Shown in pieces: positions 34,281-54,586 of a stretch of DNA of 64,000 nt. The notes beneath the pieces are model-generated. The model was not told where the DNA came from. It saw nothing but the letters and a program-made list of their open reading frames with translations, and searched no databases. Position 1 is the first letter of the stretch, and every line of letters starts with the position of its first letter. A program made the translations under genes and the position numbers. The stretch lies in the sequence record NC_070950.1; one strand, written 5' to 3'.

Positions 34281-35243
34281 ATGAGTACATTACGTGTTTA
34301 CGCGTGCGGCGGTACTGGTATTAATATTGCGTCTAAATGGATTGCCACCGGTGCGAATACGCTTATTCGTAAAGCCCAGTTCATTGGACTGGATAGCAGT
34401 GAAAACAACAAACCGTATAACGACGCCTTTAAGGTCGAACGTCCTGAAGGAACTCGTGGCGGTGGCAAAGAACGTAAGCTGATCGGTAAAATCGCTGCTG
34501 GGTTTATTGACAGTATTTTGACCAAACATAAACCGGGCGATTTCAACCTGATCATCATGAACGCGGCTGGCGCTACCGGGAGTACATTCGGCCCGACTCT
34601 GATCAACCGTCTTCTCTCTCAGGGCGTTCCGGTCATTGCGCTGGTCGTAGGCGACCTGACTTCTGAACTGGAAAACTACAACACGGTTAAAACGTTTGAA
34701 AGCTTGGACAACCAGCGCATCAATCTGAACGTACCGGTTATCATCGACTACGTGGACAACGCCAAATATCCCAGCCGCGGGTTGGCTGACAAATATGCCA
34801 TCGGCCGTCTTGATATCCTGAGCCTGTTCTTAACCGACGAACATGAAGAAAGCGATTTCCAAGACATCCGGAACCTGTTCTATTACAACCAGGTTACCAA
34901 GGCGGCGCCTACTCTTGCTCGTATCGACTTCTTGACCGATACTCAGTTAGACAACGTTACTCCGGGGCTGGTTGCTGAATTTGGTTTGTATCGTAAAGCG
35001 GACGATATCGGCAGCCATATTAAAAATCTGGCATACCGTTCGACCGGCGTTATTCAGGAAGGCAGCACTAACTTCCCAGCTGGAATAGAACATCTCCACA
35101 TGGTCTTTGATCATGATGCGACGATCAAAGATATCCTGGTTCTGGTTCAGGATCTTAAAGATATCGAGATCCAAAATAACGAACGTTTTAAATCTGCCCA
35201 GCAGGTTGGAAACGGCGGCGATGATTCTGGAATGTCCTACTAA
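34281..35243 (+). CDS. phuZ: PhuZ phage tubulin
   Basis: YACGGTGINI (T1 loop), NAAGATGST variant tubulin signature, acidic C-terminal tail DDSGMSY; 320 aa. Confidence 0.9.
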   Translation: MSTLRVYACGGTGINIASKWIATGANTLIRKAQFIGLDSSENNKPYNDAFKVERPEGTRGGGKERKLIGKIAAGFIDSILTKHKPGDFNLIIMNAAGATGSTFGPTLINRLLSQGVPVIALVVGDLTSELENYNTVKTFESLDNQRINLNVPVIIDYVDNAKYPSRGLADKYAIGRLDILSLFLTDEHEESDFQDIRNLFYYNQVTKAAPTLARIDFLTDTQLDNVTPGLVAEFGLYRKADDIGSHIKNLAYRSTGVIQEGSTNFPAGIEHLHMVFDHDATIKDILVLVQDLKDIEIQNNERFKSAQQVGNGGDDSGMSY

Positions 35244-42300: not shown

Positions 42301-42559
42301 TGTAGTCCTGTTAGTAACTCAGTATTATGTTATTACATATATCTATTATATGTAAACAAACACACCTCTCCGAAAGGAGGGGAGACCAATGCCGCGGAGT
42401 AAAAATCCGTTAAGCATAAAATCGATCAGTTTTTACCACCCCTAAATAATTTCAGACCGATATTATTTAGGTAGATAAACAACACAAATGTTTATCTGTT
42501 TTGATCAAACTTAATAACATCCCCCTTTATAAAAAGCTAATAGCTATTAGGAGTTAAGA

Positions 42560-46074: not shown

Positions 46075-47489
46075 AAACGTGTTGCCGTCCATAAATTTCT
46101 CTAACTGCTGGAACACCCTAAAGCTCGTTTAGCTACAACGTAATCCGCAAGGATAACCGTGAATGCGGTCGAAAGACAGAAAAAATAAACGAGATGATCT
46201 ATGCTTAATATCTTGATTAAGGATTTAATTGAGTGCTAAGGATTTCTAATGGGCGATCAGCATCGAAGCTTCCTTATGGGAAGAACGTTCAACGACTAAA
46301 TACATCGAATTCGTGATGTTAACGGGAAAGCAGCTTACAGGATGTGACTGCAAGATATAGTCTCAACCGGTGCGAAAGTGTCGGATAGCAAATGCTCTAG
46401 CCAGGCATTTGCTCTTGGATTAACGACCCAAGCAGCCTCTTTATTATGATCCTTTAAAATGAGAAAATTAATACCCGGAACTAAAAACTTCTATGCGGGT
46501 GACGACAATCAGATTTATGATTCTGAAGGAGTCCCTAGAAAACAATATGTGAATGGTGACGGTTACAAAACAGCTTCCGTTCTATTGGAAGACGGAAGAT
46601 GGGTAACCTTTGGAGTTCAGCGTTTAGTCGCCATGGCCTTCAAAAAGACCGACGTACCATTTGCTTTACTAACAGTCAACCACATCGATAAAGTTAAATG
46701 GAATAACACTCCGCCTAATTTGGAATGGGTGTCGAATAAGCATAACGTTATTCACGCTATTCTCCTTAATAAGAAATCTTTGAGGCCTTTAATTTCTTGC
46801 GAGAAAGATAACGAAAGTTTCTTTTTAGCGGATATCTATGATGCTGTTATCCATTTTGATTCAGACGTTGAATCAGTTTGGGGAGCTATCAGAGACGGTA
46901 AAGAAATTGATGGGTGGAAAATTTCCTACATTAAGGCCTCTGATAAAAGAAACCAGAGGATTATAGTGAAGGCCCCTAAGGAAAGATCTGGCCATGAAAG
47001 GCCGTTGACTATGATGGATGTGGAAACAGGAAATATTAAAGAATTTTCTTCCATTAAAGAAGCCGCGAGCCATTTCTCTGTCTTAATAACCCATATCCGG
47101 ATTAGAATTTCCACTCCAGGATATCCTAAGGTTTTTAGGGGGAGATATGTTTTCGTAGATAAGGGAGAGAGTTTTGATTTTCTAAATGAGGAGGTATTGG
47201 GAAGATTAAAAAGAACAGCGCCGAAACAGGTGTTAGCTTATAATTTGGAAACGTCGACTTTTCGGACGTATGATTCGGCTCGATCGTTTATTCAAAATAA
47301 TAAGCTCAGTAAAAAAGCAGTCTCGGTGAGACTGAAGAAAGAAAAATTGGAATCGGTTTCCGGTTGGTTATTTAAATACCAAACCGCTAATCCAGATTCT
47401 GATAAGAAAGCATTATTAGAGATGGCTAGATCTCTCTTAGTGTAGGAACATATGAGGCGATAAAACCGGTTAATCCGGACAATGCGAAG
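46075..47489 (+). mobile_element. Group I self-splicing intron, 1415 nt
   Basis: P1 with U-G wobble (GACGGU / GCCGUC); P AACTGCTGGAA at 46103, Q GGCGATCAGCA near 46252, R GTTCAACGACTA near 46288, S AAGATATAGTC at 46352; terminal G47489; P10 GTGTT / GACAC. Confidence 0.9.
46459..47445 (+). CDS. Intron-encoded HNH homing endonuclease (I-HmuI-like)
   Basis: VNHIDKVKWNNTPPNLEWVSNKHN HNH motif; C-terminal NUMOD1/IENR1-like repeats (EFSSIKEAASHF, TYDSARSF). Confidence 0.88.
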   Translation: MRKLIPGTKNFYAGDDNQIYDSEGVPRKQYVNGDGYKTASVLLEDGRWVTFGVQRLVAMAFKKTDVPFALLTVNHIDKVKWNNTPPNLEWVSNKHNVIHAILLNKKSLRPLISCEKDNESFFLADIYDAVIHFDSDVESVWGAIRDGKEIDGWKISYIKASDKRNQRIIVKAPKERSGHERPLTMMDVETGNIKEFSSIKEAASHFSVLITHIRIRISTPGYPKVFRGRYVFVDKGESFDFLNEEVLGRLKRTAPKQVLAYNLETSTFRTYDSARSFIQNNKLSKKAVSVRLKKEKLESVSGWLFKYQTANPDSDKKALLEMARSLLV

Positions 47490-47678
47490 GACACTATGTA
47501 CTGTTATGTATTGAGTGATTTGAAAGGTAAGGCCAAAGCGTATGGGTCGTTCGGTCATCAGTCCATGCTTGATGAAAACGAACCATTTACAATAAGTCGA
47601 TTTGCTGATCAAACTTCAACGAATTTGATGAACCTCAACAACATGATGAGAGGAACACCAATCAATGAATGCGGCTGA
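47490..47678 (+). CDS. nvRNAP beta-prime subunit exon 2 (DTMYCYVL...)
   Basis: Splicing restores NADFDGDTM, matching the canonical NADFDGDxM. Confidence 0.85.
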   Translation, partial: DTMYCYVLSDLKGKAKAYGSFGHQSMLDENEPFTISRFADQTSTNLMNLNNMMRGTPINECG

Positions 47679-48300
47679 CGCGTTTAGCTTTAGTTGTGCC
47701 GGCGCTATTGACGAAGGTCGAATGCGTCAGTATGCCGGCTACGTTCAAATGAATTTTGATAACGTGAAAGGTATGGGAGGTTGGCTGGCGAAAGAAGCAG
47801 AAAAAACGTTAGACCGATTTTCTAACTTCATGAATTCCAGGGCGTGGGAGTTATCCAAAATCCTAACGGGGAATGGCGATGGTGAATACGTAGGACGATT
47901 TGACATCGGTTATTTAGGTTCCCTCAACGCTCAACAGCAAGCCCAGGGTTTCATGCGGGATTACATCATGGCTAACCCATTGGTTATGCAGATGTATCTG
48001 GATGGAGGATTGGAAGGCTACGGTGGTGAGTTCTCCCCGTTCTGTAATGCCGTTGGTAAGAACAACGTTTTCTATCGTAACGCCACCCATGGTATAGTAC
48101 AAACTGAAACTAAAGACGACGTTCAGAAAACTTGGTTCAGTCACTTTGGTGATGTGCCGGGCACAGGAATGTCATTTAGGGAACAAGCAGACATCATGAG
48201 AACTTGGAAAGCGACCAATCACCTGATAGGTTCTCAACTCTTTGATATGACCTCACCATCGAATAAAAAGATGAATGAGGATAACGAAGAGGAAACATAA
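47665..48300 (+). CDS. Probable conserved jumbo-phage protein, 211 aa
   Basis: Overlaps the end of exon 2; GAGGA RBS. Confidence 0.7.
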   Translation: MNAADAFSFSCAGAIDEGRMRQYAGYVQMNFDNVKGMGGWLAKEAEKTLDRFSNFMNSRAWELSKILTGNGDGEYVGRFDIGYLGSLNAQQQAQGFMRDYIMANPLVMQMYLDGGLEGYGGEFSPFCNAVGKNNVFYRNATHGIVQTETKDDVQKTWFSHFGDVPGTGMSFREQADIMRTWKATNHLIGSQLFDMTSPSNKKMNEDNEEET

Positions 48301-48348
48301 ACATTTTTGGGGGAGGAAACTCCCCCATTTAACATCGAGAGTAAACTT

Positions 48349-48711
48349 ATGAATAGCGAACAAACCAAACCCATGCATAGTGTTTTTATGCAAATCATCA
48401 GTTCCGAAGAAATCGGTAATTTGAAGAATGCCGTTCGGAATACCGAATTCCTTTTAGCCGAGTTAGGCGAATCGGAAGACGGCAAACCACTGGATCCATC
48501 CCATCTGATCTTTATTGTAACTGACATGTCTTTTGACGAACACGGAAACTTGATGGGAAGAGTAACTCCCACCGGCCCATACAAGGACAAGGGACGGGAA
48601 TGGATTTCAACTAAAAAATATAAAACACCTATTTTTAAGTTTATTCCGAGAGTGGCTACGAATAACCGCAATTGGACCTTCATCAATAAACTCGACGTGG
48701 TGGTCAAATAA
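48349..48711 (+). CDS. Hypothetical protein
   Basis: ATG 48349 after a hairpin; TAATG coupling to the next gene. Confidence 0.6.
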   Translation: MNSEQTKPMHSVFMQIISSEEIGNLKNAVRNTEFLLAELGESEDGKPLDPSHLIFIVTDMSFDEHGNLMGRVTPTGPYKDKGREWISTKKYKTPIFKFIPRVATNNRNWTFINKLDVVVK

Positions 48712-49073
48712 TGGAAACCACTCGGGATTATACAGCGAAGATCAAATGGCCTTTTGTTGTTGTGTTTAATCTCAATGATGGTCCGGAGGAAACTTCCTCC
48801 GTGATCATTAAAACCAGGATCCCTTCTGGCGGATATAAGGAATTCCACATCTACTTAAAAGATTTAATCGACCGTGCTCGTTTAAACGTTCGAGGGTCAA
48901 TCTCGGATAAAGATTTCTTAACCGATATTAGCGAGTATTTTATTTCGTCTGTTGCTTCTAAATCAGCGGATAAGAAAACCTTGGCTGAGGCCTGTCGGTC
49001 GGTTTTAGAAGGAAACGTGTTTAATCGTAAGATATTCGTTCCCTTTTACGGACTCAGGCCGAGAGAAGAATAA
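48711..49073 (+). CDS. Hypothetical protein, 120 aa
   Basis: Translationally coupled start. Confidence 0.65.
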   Translation: METTRDYTAKIKWPFVVVFNLNDGPEETSSVIIKTRIPSGGYKEFHIYLKDLIDRARLNVRGSISDKDFLTDISEYFISSVASKSADKKTLAEACRSVLEGNVFNRKIFVPFYGLRPREE

Positions 49074-49124
49074 TTGACATGCAGATAATTATACATCGAT
49101 ATTATTTAGTCGGAGGAATTAAAT

Positions 49125-50261
49125 ATGTTTATTTCTAAACGAGGTAAGCTCCGACTACATAAAGATGATTTAGAAACAATCGAAAGAACTTTTGGTTGTC
49201 GGAGGTTTGTATGGAATCAGCTTTTAGGATTTCATAAAAATCAGTATGAAAAATGGAAAGAAGATTGTACTTTAGAGAAACCTAAAGTTTCTATTTCGGC
49301 TTTTAGAGAGGAATTTAAACGTCTTAAATTAACACACCCTTGGTTAAATGAAGTAAGCTCTATCGTTTTATATGAGACTATTACCGATCTTTATAATGCT
49401 TTTCAGGGTTTCTTTAAGAGCGGTAAAGGTTATCCTAAATTTAAATCTAAACGAGGGATGCAATCTTTTCGAATAGCTTCTCGATACAACATGCGTGTTT
49501 CAGGTAATCGAGTTAGGATACCTAAGTCGAATTACTACGCTAAGTTCTCTAAAAATACGGTTTTAAACGATCCTTCGTCATATACGGTCACTCGTGACAA
49601 CGTAGGAGATTATTTCATCTCTTTTGTAGACCAGATCGACGAGATCGAACAAGAGCCTGAAAGTAAAGGTAAGCACGTTGGTATTGATTTAGGGATTAAA
49701 TCTTTAGCGATTATCAACTCTAATAAAGGGGAGTCTTGGGAGTTAGAAAATCCCAAAACCTACGTCAAGTACCAAAAAAGGAGAACGACGCTACAACGTC
49801 GTTTAATGAAAAAGAAGAAAGGGAGTAACAATCGTAACAAAGCCAAAATTAAATTAGCAAAGTTAGAACGTAAAGTATCTAATATCCGTAAAGATCTTTT
49901 ACACAAATTTACCACTAAGATTATTCGTGAAAACCAAACCATAGTTTTAGAGGATTTAAACGTAAAAGGAATGGTTAAAAATCATAAACTGGCTAAACAT
50001 ATTCAAGATTGTTCTTTTGGTACGATTAGAACAATGTTAGAATATAAAGCTAAGCGTTATACCAAACCAAAAGTGATTTGTCTTGTTCATCGTTTTTATC
50101 CCAGTACTCAACTCTGTTCTCATTGTGGCATGAAAAGTGAAGTGAAAATCAAACTTCATATAAGAGAATGGACCTGTGGTCACTGTGGGGTTAAACACGA
50201 TAGAGATATCAATGCAGCTACGAATATCCTTAACGAAGGATGTCGTTTAACAGCCTCCTAG
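49125..50261 (+). CDS. tnpB: TnpB RNA-guided nuclease (IS200/IS605 OrfB family), stand-alone
   Basis: RRFVWN HTH; RuvC triad GIDLG / VLEDL / HDRDINAA intact; Zn ribbon CSHC...CGHC; no tnpA in the window. Confidence 0.92.
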   Translation: MFISKRGKLRLHKDDLETIERTFGCRRFVWNQLLGFHKNQYEKWKEDCTLEKPKVSISAFREEFKRLKLTHPWLNEVSSIVLYETITDLYNAFQGFFKSGKGYPKFKSKRGMQSFRIASRYNMRVSGNRVRIPKSNYYAKFSKNTVLNDPSSYTVTRDNVGDYFISFVDQIDEIEQEPESKGKHVGIDLGIKSLAIINSNKGESWELENPKTYVKYQKRRTTLQRRLMKKKKGSNNRNKAKIKLAKLERKVSNIRKDLLHKFTTKIIRENQTIVLEDLNVKGMVKNHKLAKHIQDCSFGTIRTMLEYKAKRYTKPKVICLVHRFYPSTQLCSHCGMKSEVKIKLHIREWTCGHCGVKHDRDINAATNILNEGCRLTAS

Positions 50262-50372
50262 GTTAAGGGTATTTAATTACCCCTACCCTTGGTCTGAGGG
50301 GACGTTAAGCCTGTGGAGCCGGGTTGCAGTTAGGACCCCCTATGAAACAGGAAATTGAAAAATATGAGACAG
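50230..50372 (+). ncRNA. Putative TnpB omega-RNA (scaffold plus guide)
   Basis: Scaffold-like ACGTTAAGCCTGTGGAG ... CTATGAAACAGGAA overlapping and following the tnpB 3' end; boundaries approximate. Confidence 0.55.
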
Positions 50373-50398
50373 AATATTTTATTTATAAGGAATCTATT

Positions 50399-50524
50399 AT
50401 GTCAATCATCGCCTCTATCGCCATCGTTGTTATTATCACCGCAGTAGTCTACGTGCTCACCAAAGATGCCGTGGAAGAAATCTTCCCGGTGCGTAAAGAA
50501 ATGGCTGTTCGTAACAAACGTTAA
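50399..50524 (+). CDS. 41-aa single-pass membrane peptide
   Basis: AAGGA RBS; hydrophobic IIASIAIVVIITAVVYVL then a basic tail; terminator at 50535-50582. Confidence 0.7.
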   Translation: MSIIASIAIVVIITAVVYVLTKDAVEEIFPVRKEMAVRNKR

Positions 50525-50582
50525 TTTATTGTTACTCCCCTCCGAAAGGAGGGGAGCCTAACCGCGATTATTTTTTTTTTTC

Positions 50583-50990
50583 ATGAGGTTCATGATGACC
50601 GGATTTTGCGTTGCAACAATGTCGACGTTGGGCTTTATAGCCGATGACGTTAAACTCGCTATGGACAGACACCTCACTTATTGGTTTGCATCCAGACGCG
50701 ATCAAAATAAGTTAATAGGTGAGGTCGATTCCTTTGAATATCTTCTGATGACCTACCAAGGTAATCGGAGCGCTTTGGTCAGTAATGTCGAAAGCTCACT
50801 CAGGACTTACTTCCAGCAGATTTTCAGTACTGTAGAAGTTCAAGTGTCAGATTCCGATATGCCGGGTGAAACAGAAAACTTTACACTGGTCATGGCGCTT
50901 AGGGTGACACACGAAGGCGTCCCTTATGACCTTCAAAATGCCGTTATCGTATCCGGCGCTTCTTATACTCTTCTTCCGAGAGGTAACTAA
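50583..50990 (+). CDS. Probable conserved protein, possibly baseplate-wedge (gp25-like) fold; start uncertain
   Basis: ~125-135 aa ORF heading the SbcD operon; fold is a guess. Confidence 0.55.
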   Translation: MRFMMTGFCVATMSTLGFIADDVKLAMDRHLTYWFASRRDQNKLIGEVDSFEYLLMTYQGNRSALVSNVESSLRTYFQQIFSTVEVQVSDSDMPGETENFTLVMALRVTHEGVPYDLQNAVIVSGASYTLLPRGN

Positions 50991-50992
50991 CA

Positions 50993-51754
50993 ATGTCCGA
51001 CAAAATGCCATCCGAACACTACGCGCTTAAATTCTTAGAGGGCGGCACCCCTAAGGTTATCAATGGTAAACGCTACCTGGAAATGAACGGCGAACTGGTG
51101 AACGTCGCCACTTCTATTTCAGAGGCGACCTTCGTCAGAGATTGGCTTCTCGGATTCTCGTTAGGTTATGTCGGCGAGAAGTCTTATTTTGATTTTGCAC
51201 GGTGGATGGAAATTAGTAACGAAGGACGCTCGGCTGTTATCGTCCATGATAACGAAGACGAAAATAAACCTATCTTTGTTGTTCCTCCTCTGACCGATAC
51301 GAAAATGACAGCTCAGGAAATGGAAGTTCTTCAGGTAGCCGCTGGCGTGATGAGCAATGCTTATGGCGCGCAATTCGGCGGATCGACCAGCAGAAGTACC
51401 GAAATACTTTTACAGGGTCTGTCCATTATCCAAAAAGGTCTGCAGTCTGGCGAATACACCATAACTGATCTCGTCCCACCCTTCATCTATGAAAAATACT
51501 CGATCAATCCTCGAGTATTTAAAAAGATGATGCATTGTAAAAATACCTTTGGGTTGGATACCAATGATGAGAGCTGGAAAGTTCTAGAAGCTTGTTTCAG
51601 AGTCATTGACGAAGGTAAAGTGTTAAAACAACAACAGTACGACTTCTTAATGGCGATCACGCAAAATACAGCAATCGTCCCCGATCAATGTAAACCTGAC
51701 AGTAAAAATAAACAGGAAGATCAATTTACAGAGATCAACCCATTTGAGTGTTAA
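50993..51754 (+). CDS. Probable conserved jumbo-phage protein, 253 aa
   Basis: Packed in the operon before the SbcD-like gene. Confidence 0.7.
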   Translation: MSDKMPSEHYALKFLEGGTPKVINGKRYLEMNGELVNVATSISEATFVRDWLLGFSLGYVGEKSYFDFARWMEISNEGRSAVIVHDNEDENKPIFVVPPLTDTKMTAQEMEVLQVAAGVMSNAYGAQFGGSTSRSTEILLQGLSIIQKGLQSGEYTITDLVPPFIYEKYSINPRVFKKMMHCKNTFGLDTNDESWKVLEACFRVIDEGKVLKQQQYDFLMAITQNTAIVPDQCKPDSKNKQEDQFTEINPFEC

Positions 51755-52887
51755 GCATGATTAATTCCCCCAAGAAAATTAGGATGTTGTGGTCAAGTGA
51801 TCATCACACACTTCATGAAGGTACCCCCACAGTTCACATCTTAAGTAACCTGGGGGAATTCTTTTATAAGTACAATTCCCTGGCAGAAACAGACATCGTT
51901 GTTTTTGGCGGTGATTTTTTTCATAAGCTAGTCGATGCTTCTAACAGCTCGATGCGTTTATGTGAATATTGGATTAACAAATTTTTAATTCGGTGTGCTG
52001 AAAATAACGTTGTGGTGAGAGTACTGGAAGGGACGAGTTCTCACGACTGGGAACAACCGGAAATATTCCAAATATTGAGCCCGGATAACCTTGATTTAAA
52101 ATGGGTTAAAGAGCTGAGTATTGAGCGCATTGAAAAACTGGATATGACCGTGCTTTACGTTCCGGATAACATGGGGGGTAAGAAGCCCGAGGTTATTTGG
52201 GATGAGGTCATCGACCTTCTAACTAAGCATAACCTGGAGAAGGTAGATTTTGTCTTTTTCCACGGATCGTTTAAATACCAGTTGGACGAACGTTTTAGTA
52301 AACATAGCCATGATGAAAAATTGTGGTCGACGATTGTTAACTATTATATCTTTGCCGGGCACATCCACAAACCTTCAGAATGTGGGCCGATCAGATGTTC
52401 AGGATCCTTCGATAGAACAGGTCATTCGGAGGAGCATCCTAAGGGCGGATATATCGTTGATTACTTCCCAGAAGATAAGAAGTGCACCGCCACCTTTTAT
52501 GAGAATAAAAAGGCGCTGCCTTATATCACCCTGAGAATTACACCGGAAACAACAACAGAAGAACTAAATGATAAGCTTGGGTTCCTAATGGATAAGCGAT
52601 ACCCCAAAGCCAGTCATTTTTGGATTAGAGGAGGGAATCCTCTCGTCGTTAATCCGATCATTCAGTTCTTCAAACAACAATATCCTCAGTATGACTTTAA
52701 GAAAGAAAACGTTGTTACTCATGAAGCAGTAATTGACGATGAGCTTTATACTGAAGATCTTTATTCCGGCATAACGTTAACGAAAGATAACATCATCCCT
52801 TCTCTAATGGGCTATTTGAATAAGAAGATTTTGTTAGTGGATGAAGAGTTAGATTCCCTAACAAAAACAATGGAGGAGTTTATCTAA
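51748..52887 (+). CDS. SbcD/Mre11-like metallophosphoesterase nuclease
   Basis: SDHH, GGDFFH, GTSSHD, FHG and AGHIH motifs. Confidence 0.88.
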   Translation: MLSMINSPKKIRMLWSSDHHTLHEGTPTVHILSNLGEFFYKYNSLAETDIVVFGGDFFHKLVDASNSSMRLCEYWINKFLIRCAENNVVVRVLEGTSSHDWEQPEIFQILSPDNLDLKWVKELSIERIEKLDMTVLYVPDNMGGKKPEVIWDEVIDLLTKHNLEKVDFVFFHGSFKYQLDERFSKHSHDEKLWSTIVNYYIFAGHIHKPSECGPIRCSGSFDRTGHSEEHPKGGYIVDYFPEDKKCTATFYENKKALPYITLRITPETTTEELNDKLGFLMDKRYPKASHFWIRGGNPLVVNPIIQFFKQQYPQYDFKKENVVTHEAVIDDELYTEDLYSGITLTKDNIIPSLMGYLNKKILLVDEELDSLTKTMEEFI

Positions 52888-54520: not shown

Positions 54521-54586
54521 ATAATTTTTTAGCACTATATTATTTACTGGTAAACCCCGGCTATAAAAATTATTGGGAGTAATAAC

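Follow-up and report, generated by a model that had tools for sequence, protein, structure and literature searches.

The genome of Klebsiella phage Miami carries an insertion (window 49106-50371) that we read as a TnpA-less TnpB/omega-RNA cassette of the IS200/IS605 type, which probably spreads by RNA-guided homing. Judging from sequence, we give this reading a probability of about 0.6. The insertion has exact ends, close relatives lack it at this site, sister copies are found at many other sites, the protein and the tail following its gene are under purifying selection, and no transposase was found in the five phage records searched. Beyond general reports of TnpB in phages, we found no description of this jumbo-phage TnpB family in the literature.

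The window is the whole 64,000-nt stretch of DNA that was analysed, and it comes from Klebsiella phage Miami (MT701590.1, 253,383 bp). A position in that record minus 189,383 gives the window position, and window 47600-52000 was 100% identical to MT701590.1. The first-pass annotation of the window had linked the gene to a nucleus-forming phage. This was borne out, as PMC10299810 places Miami in the family of nucleus-forming phages with chimallin and the window has a weak tubulin-family match at 34302-34715.

Insertion site and empty alleles

We compared the flanks of the insertion with phages phiKp_32, YC1, VB_ZK_P1, BUCTxx100 and KPN8. All five lack tnpB at this site: their flanks are 96-98% identical to those of Miami, the middle 29% of the query is missing, and where Miami has the 1,266-bp insert they have 18 bp of native sequence. 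In alignments with phiKp_32 and KPN8 the left junction falls at 49105|49106, directly 3' of CGATATTAT. The right end is GACA at 50368-50371, and homology with the empty site restarts at 50372. Metagenome contigs independently confirmed these joints, 49105 and 50372 being separated by 18 letters. The features of the locus are as follows.

49097-49105, plus strand: native phage motif CGATATTAT, also present in the empty sites; likely an early-promoter core, its final TTAT being the likely target/TAM; the insert begins directly after it.
49106-49124, plus strand: left end and 5' leader, conserved among copies, with the Shine-Dalgarno sequence GGAGG at 49112-49116.
49125-50261, plus strand: tnpB, intact, 378 aa, with D188, E276 and D361 and with C331/C334/C351/C354.
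50209-50371, plus strand: omega-RNA scaffold, overlapping the last ~50 nt of tnpB, including the 18-mer 50354-50371 and ending in GACA (50368-50371); the 5' limit is approximate.
50372-50391, plus strand: predicted guide, the first ~16-20 nt of native flank, starting at 50373 if 50372 belongs to the scaffold (compare position -1 of ISDra2).
50399-50524, plus strand: native small membrane-protein gene, 41 aa from the ATG at 50399; its orthologues phiKp32_0200 and KPN8_270 have 126 nt.

The gene had been described as having no transposon ends. As to the ends themselves this has to be corrected, since the insert ends sharply and exactly on both sides; what stood is that classical GC-rich subterminal hairpins were not found. 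Two candidate end hairpins were seen, a weak AT-rich one of 3-5 bp before GACA, which covaries between subfamilies, and a stem between the ribosome-binding site and codons 9-11. Neither resembles a TnpA-binding hairpin.

The cassette now separates the 41-aa membrane-protein gene (50399-50524) from its promoter. In GenBank this gene is CPT_Miami_288 (50342-50524, 60 aa), and the annotated ATG lies inside the omega-RNA scaffold. In the relatives the orthologues have 41 aa, with a start codon that corresponds to 50399; the start of CPT_Miami_288 was probably mis-called.

A 328-aa ORF with HNH_3 and NUMOD1 matches, of the free-standing homing-endonuclease type, is located 1.7 kb upstream of tnpB (window 46459-47445, plus strand). 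The GenBank record has no CDS there, and ~1.4 kb around the ORF are absent from 5/5 relatives. It is a second mobile nuclease gene near tnpB. We also note that OR529409.1, named 'Stenotrophomonas phage BUCTxx100', is ~97% identical to the Klebsiella phages over the compared loci, and its label looks doubtful.

The TnpB protein

The ORF at 49125-50261 matched OrfB_IS605 (1.8e-29), Cas12f1-like_TNB (5.2e-20) and HTH_OrfB_IS605 (5.8e-7) in Pfam, all above the curated cut-offs. ISDra2 TnpB (8bf8/8exa) aligned with the Miami protein end to end (E=1.8e-55). The RuvC triad D188/E276/D361 and the zinc-ribbon residues C331, C334, C351 and C354 were invariant across 27 family members. The protein is thus full-length with triad and ribbon complete, in agreement with the first-pass description of an intact TnpB, and nuclease activity is predicted. 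Among the copies dN/dS was 0.09-0.22 at a dS of 0.5-2, and the TnpB protein is therefore under strong purifying selection. GC content across tnpB is ~33-35%, against 44% for the Miami genome.

The ribosome-binding site of tnpB forms one side of an 8-bp stem, the inverted repeat I1, in which 49108-49115 pairs with 49149-49156 (codons 9-11). The stem is kept in most copies via G-U changes and could possibly act as a translational brake. A comparable brake is known for IS200 tnpA.

The omega-RNA scaffold and its guide

The tail from the stop codon to GACA is better conserved than the gene before it, with a mean identity of 86% (minimum 77%) against 72% for the CDS in 13 copies. RNAalifold gave 48 pairs for eight copies, eight of them with compensatory changes, mostly in the stem at alignment columns 141-163. 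Folded as a single sequence, the tail had z = -1.59, a stability that is not significant. No matching omega-RNA family was found in Rfam at the gathering threshold or at E<=10. The identity and the compensatory pairs bear out the omega-RNA-like 3' region that had been noticed on first inspection. With the TnpB domains, the triad and the RNA all present, we assign the gene to the TnpB (IS200/IS605 OrfB) class, for which RNA-guided, TAM-dependent cleavage is predicted.

Conservation among copies extends over ...GAARCAGGAA, a short AT-rich hairpin and (A)AGACA, and no further. The hairpin differs in sequence between subfamilies and keeps its pairing. The terminal ...AAGACA is present in 15 of 16 compared copies, P19_54 being the one without it.

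The first-pass annotation had proposed 50354-50375 as the guide. ZKP1_a, a VB_ZK_P1 copy located elsewhere, has the 18-mer 50354-50371 with one change. Six copies at different loci share a sister version of it without any difference, and a seventh departs from that version by one base; the proteins of these copies are ~61-80% identical to that of Miami. Because the 18-mer recurs at different loci, 18 of the 22 bases of the proposed guide belong to the element, and we abandoned that proposal.

In ISDra2, the pseudoknot arises from pairing of positions -5 to -3, just ahead of the guide, with a stretch ~100 nt upstream; position -2 makes a non-canonical pair and position -1 is unpaired (PMC10097598). 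In the Miami family, the AGAC of the terminal GACA can pair with a conserved GGTCT ~80 nt upstream, which suggests a pseudoknot here too; covariation cannot test this pairing, because both sides barely vary. Given the covarying hairpin, a GACA/GGTCT pairing like the ISDra2 pseudoknot and the precedent of position -1, the 18-mer reads as scaffold. The scaffold likely ends at 50371 (or 50372), with native flank from 50372 (or 50373) as the guide.

We compared the exact guide 19-mer with IMG/VR and with species-representative genomes, one per species, and obtained only chance matches in unrelated AT-rich organisms, none of them enterobacterial. An enzyme aimed at host DNA, as had been suggested, finds no support in this result: the likely guide is the phage's own flank, and the exact 19-mer has no match in any enterobacterial species representative.

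The relationship to ISDra2 TnpB of Deinococcus radiodurans (8bf8, 8exa, 8h1j) extends to domain order, length class and the aligned D-E-D triad and zinc ribbon. The ISDra2 omega/reRNA is alike in that the scaffold overlaps the 3' end of the gene and reaches the right end, with a guide expected from the flank (PMC10097598). ISDra2, however, has tnpA, hairpin ends and the TAM TTGAT, whereas the Miami cassette has no tnpA in the phage, a 19-nt left end, TTAT as its likely TAM and ragged junctions.

Copies in other phages and in metagenomes

Miami has one copy, VB_ZK_P1 three, phiKp_32 two, BUCTxx100 one and KPN8 none. These seven intact copies in four phages occupy seven different loci. The six outside Miami encode proteins 68-80% identical to that of Miami, and each has a matching empty site in the other phages. 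The closest relatives of Miami TnpB are all found in jumbo-phage-like contexts, phage EL among them. ORF037 of EL, a 'putative transposase', is 52% identical as a protein, has an RNA tail ending in AAAGACA and carries CTATATTAT before its left end; it differs in belonging to another phage genus, in its locus and in having a longer leader.

A protein word search returned ~26 clusters with at least 47% identity, and the next matches dropped to 45% or less. We inspected 11 contigs representing 10 of the ~26 clusters, and all 11 had phage-type neighbours (Cpn60, SMC_N, SLT, Acb1, Tad2-like). Nine further loci came from metagenomes. A protein search of IMG/VR gave relatives at 45% full-length identity or less and thus no additional close copies. 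As far as sampled, the cassette family is restricted to Miami-like and EL-like jumbo phages. A 1.8-kb contig with a family member (P0006) is labelled as a 'Spirochaetia bacterium' MAG, a label that looks doubtful.

Two of the copies depart from the Miami element in different ways. P0001 is a 96% identical copy at the Miami locus with the same right junction; its differences from the Miami element cluster beside difference-free stretches, so that the two form a mosaic. P0016 (L180 1112-2265), on a 252.8-kb contig of an NCBI assembly, lies upstream of Cpn60 and is split by a frameshift or stop into 124 and 254 aa. It is a decaying member of the TnpB family.

The metagenome runs X2, X3 and X15 were available as contigs and serve as evidence of presence only; the RNA-labelled runs are wastewater libraries kept as contigs and probably represent DNA. 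X3 contained the filled allele, with contigs over both junctions, together with the empty allele, and X15 contained the empty allele. In X2, the left flank and first 715 nt of the element had 2 differences from Miami over 1,121 positions, and contigs further along the element had 0 to 2. Over the right junction, the X2 contig 50337-50700 had 21 differences in 364 nt, all the listed ones lying right of 50400, and many of them are common to the empty allele of X15. A near-identical element joined to an X15-like diverged right flank therefore indicates that one element occupies differing backbones, an outcome to be expected of homing or gene conversion. Both patterns expected of a homing gene, presence and absence at one site (the five relatives and X3) and one element in diverged backbones (X2), were found.

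Search for a transposase

Searched in six frames, the full-length records of Miami, VB_ZK_P1, phiKp_32, BUCTxx100 and EL gave no match to the profiles PF01797 (Y1_Tnp) and PF00239 (resolvase), and the control genomes scored. No tnpA was seen beside the family copies on the 11 inspected metagenomic contigs. The earlier statement that the window has no tnpA can hence be extended to five whole phage records, which lack the Y1 or serine TnpA of an autonomous IS200/IS605 transposon.

Promoter motif, target and junctions

In 10 of 16 copies, EL included, the left end is immediately preceded by the motif C-K-A-Y-A-T-Y-A-T (K = T or G). For the motif-preceded copies whose empty alleles are known (Miami, ZKP1_c, Kp32_b), the motif is in those empty sites as well. 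TAYATTAT occurs nine times on the plus strand of the Miami genome and not once on the minus strand, against ~34 occurrences expected for the two strands combined. Nearly all occurrences look intergenic, and most are preceded by a T-tract. Examples of a T-tract with CTAYATTAT or CGATATTAT are window 42458-42470, 49097-49109 and 54535-54547. Jumbo phages with their own RNA polymerases have early promoters that are AT-rich motifs of ~10 nt, centred near -10 (PMC7598289). On the basis of these promoters and of the distribution of the motif in Miami, we take CTAYATTAT as a candidate early promoter of Miami-like phages.

The promoters that the first-pass annotation had assigned to the gene did not hold up. 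The TTGACA box (49074-49079) is native phage sequence found in the empty sites, and sigma-70-like matches are no commoner than in shuffles. The first nine bases of the phage promoter-like 13-mer upstream are likewise native and also in the empty sites. TATATTAT was considered as an abundant promoter in the window and rejected, having one match only; the genome-wide count showed the motif to be rare and strictly strand-specific.

Of the nine motif sites of Miami, 38451 and 107037 are the empty sites of the ZKP1_c and Kp32_b copies, and the P0004 insertion is found a few dozen bases downstream of a third, 73749. ZKP1_a and Kp32_a are inserted directly after TTATG. With insertions behind the motif or TTATG, our best guess for the target/TAM is thus TTAT, which may either coincide with the promoter core or have been selected for providing expression. 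In seven empty sites, the guide match was preceded by TTAT in two, each with a mismatch at the first guide base, and by YCAT, AAAT, ACTA, TCTA and TCGA in the others. These seven sites thus did not yield one consistent TAM.

The right junctions are exact and the left junctions ragged. At the left, 18 bp of the target were lost in Miami and ~214 bp in ZKP1_b, and extra foreign DNA is present in ZKP1_a (45 nt) and Kp32_a (150 nt). This foreign DNA ends in TTAT/TCAT just before the element and contains a full promoter-like motif in Kp32_a. In ZKP1_c, Kp32_b and BUCT, 5-11 bp of the target are duplicated on both sides. TnpA peel-and-paste, staggered-cut duplication and circle integration via promoter homology were each tried as a uniform junction model; each fits some sites and fails at others. 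ZKP1_a (L009 ~2743-2760) is inserted directly after the start codon of the downstream gene. Its right end brings a new in-frame ATG, and the downstream gene starts M-R-H-F-Y-D, not M-F-Y-D.

The Miami guide from 50372 has a perfect match in the empty alleles, preceded by AAAT and not by TTAT, and 18 bp of the native sequence there are missing from Miami; homing of the Miami copy into the empty alleles known so far may thus not be possible. The empty alleles of ZKP1_a and Kp32_a have TTAT followed by a 15/16 guide match, and that of ZKP1_b has TCAT or CCAT followed by a perfect guide match. From these matches, homing by the family appears plausible, and homing by Miami's own copy uncertain.

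Alternative explanations

A non-autonomous IS200/IS605 element could be moved in trans by a Y1 TnpA of the host or of another phage. The exact and conserved right end (...AAGACA in 15/16 copies) would fit such an origin, as would TTAT-type bases directly before the left end in 10/16 copies, and ZKP1_a and Kp32_a, if the element is taken to be one base longer, sit cleanly at TTATG without any duplication. We nevertheless think it unlikely. TnpA is lacking in the five phage genomes and beside the copies on the 11 metagenomic contigs, recognisable TnpA-type subterminal hairpins were not found, and a host enzyme would need access to DNA in the phage nucleus. Peel-and-paste, moreover, does not produce ragged left junctions (45/150 nt foreign, 18/~214 bp lost, 5-11 bp duplicated).

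Similar doubt attaches to a passive passenger, spread by general phage recombination alone, with TnpB kept for another role or transiently. Ordinary phage recombination could spread the cassette without a nuclease; the element copies are mosaic (P0001 against Miami), and the junctions resemble illegitimate recombination. Yet a dN/dS of 0.1-0.2 over a dS of up to 2, invariant catalytic residues and an 86% identical tail are hard to explain without a function of the nuclease and RNA, which makes this explanation improbable.

The main reading of the first-pass annotation, a domesticated TnpB with a fixed element-internal guide (the 18-mer after GGAA) directed against the host or rival phages, has in its favour an intact nuclease under purifying selection and an 18-mer more conserved than the protein, with a sister version identical in six copies, and is still very unlikely: the 18-mer block is scaffold-like, being a hairpin that covaries between subfamilies plus the GACA that can pair with GGTCT, and presence/absence polymorphism, many loci and a decayed copy misfit a fixed gene benefiting the host. 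Insertion polymorphism between 96-98% identical flanks, copies at many loci, a frameshifted copy and filled and empty alleles in one metagenome therefore mark a selfish mobile element, not a domesticated gene. Among the three options raised at first, a homing device for this locus is the best supported.

Proposed homing without a transposase

We propose that the homing cassette works as follows. Lying directly behind the phage promoter motif, it would be transcribed from that promoter. TnpB would bind the 3' part of its own transcript, the scaffold ending in GACA together with a guide from the adjoining flank at 50372. During mixed infection, the complex would cut a related phage's allele that lacks the cassette, and repair by recombination with the cassette-bearing genome would copy the cassette into the cut allele. 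Now and then the cassette would reach a new locus, in most cases immediately 3' of TTAT in the promoter motif.

IS605-family TnpB has been described as a transposon homing nuclease (PMC10690162). The RNA-guided cut of a vacant site and the recombinational copying described there are the mechanism that we propose for the Miami cassette. The experimental cases concern bacterial chromosomes and plasmids, whereas the arena of the Miami cassette would be co-infecting jumbo phages. A 2026 review (PMC13565253) prefers 'non-restorative homing' as the explanation for a plasmid population in which spread depended on TnpB and not on TnpA, and lists co-infecting phages as possible homing targets. The seg and mob genes of T-even phages are similar as well, each being one nuclease gene between conserved phage genes that varies among close relatives and spreads in mixed infections. 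Their products recognise DNA via protein contacts, whereas the guide of Miami TnpB would be RNA and would change with every new flank.

More tentatively, and with less than even odds, the copies may form a fully transposase-independent RNA-guided homing family in nucleus-forming jumbo phages. Such a family would sit behind the early-promoter core CTAYATTAT, be expressed by phage RNA polymerase and use each new flank as a guide to invade or exclude co-infecting relatives in the phage nucleus. The DNA of these phages lies within a protein shell, where an active nuclease has to act, and this makes nuclear import and transcription by phage polymerases directly testable.

Cas12 descends from TnpB, whose role in nature is still under study. 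If the reading is true, a lineage able to persist and to pass from one lytic phage to another with no transposase would be a clean natural case of RNA-guided homing and a new player in the competition of co-infecting phages. Exact insertion behind a rare promoter motif offers a starting point for studying the early promoters of Miami-like phages, and the compact 378-aa nuclease with its ~160-nt scaffold is a candidate genome-editing tool.
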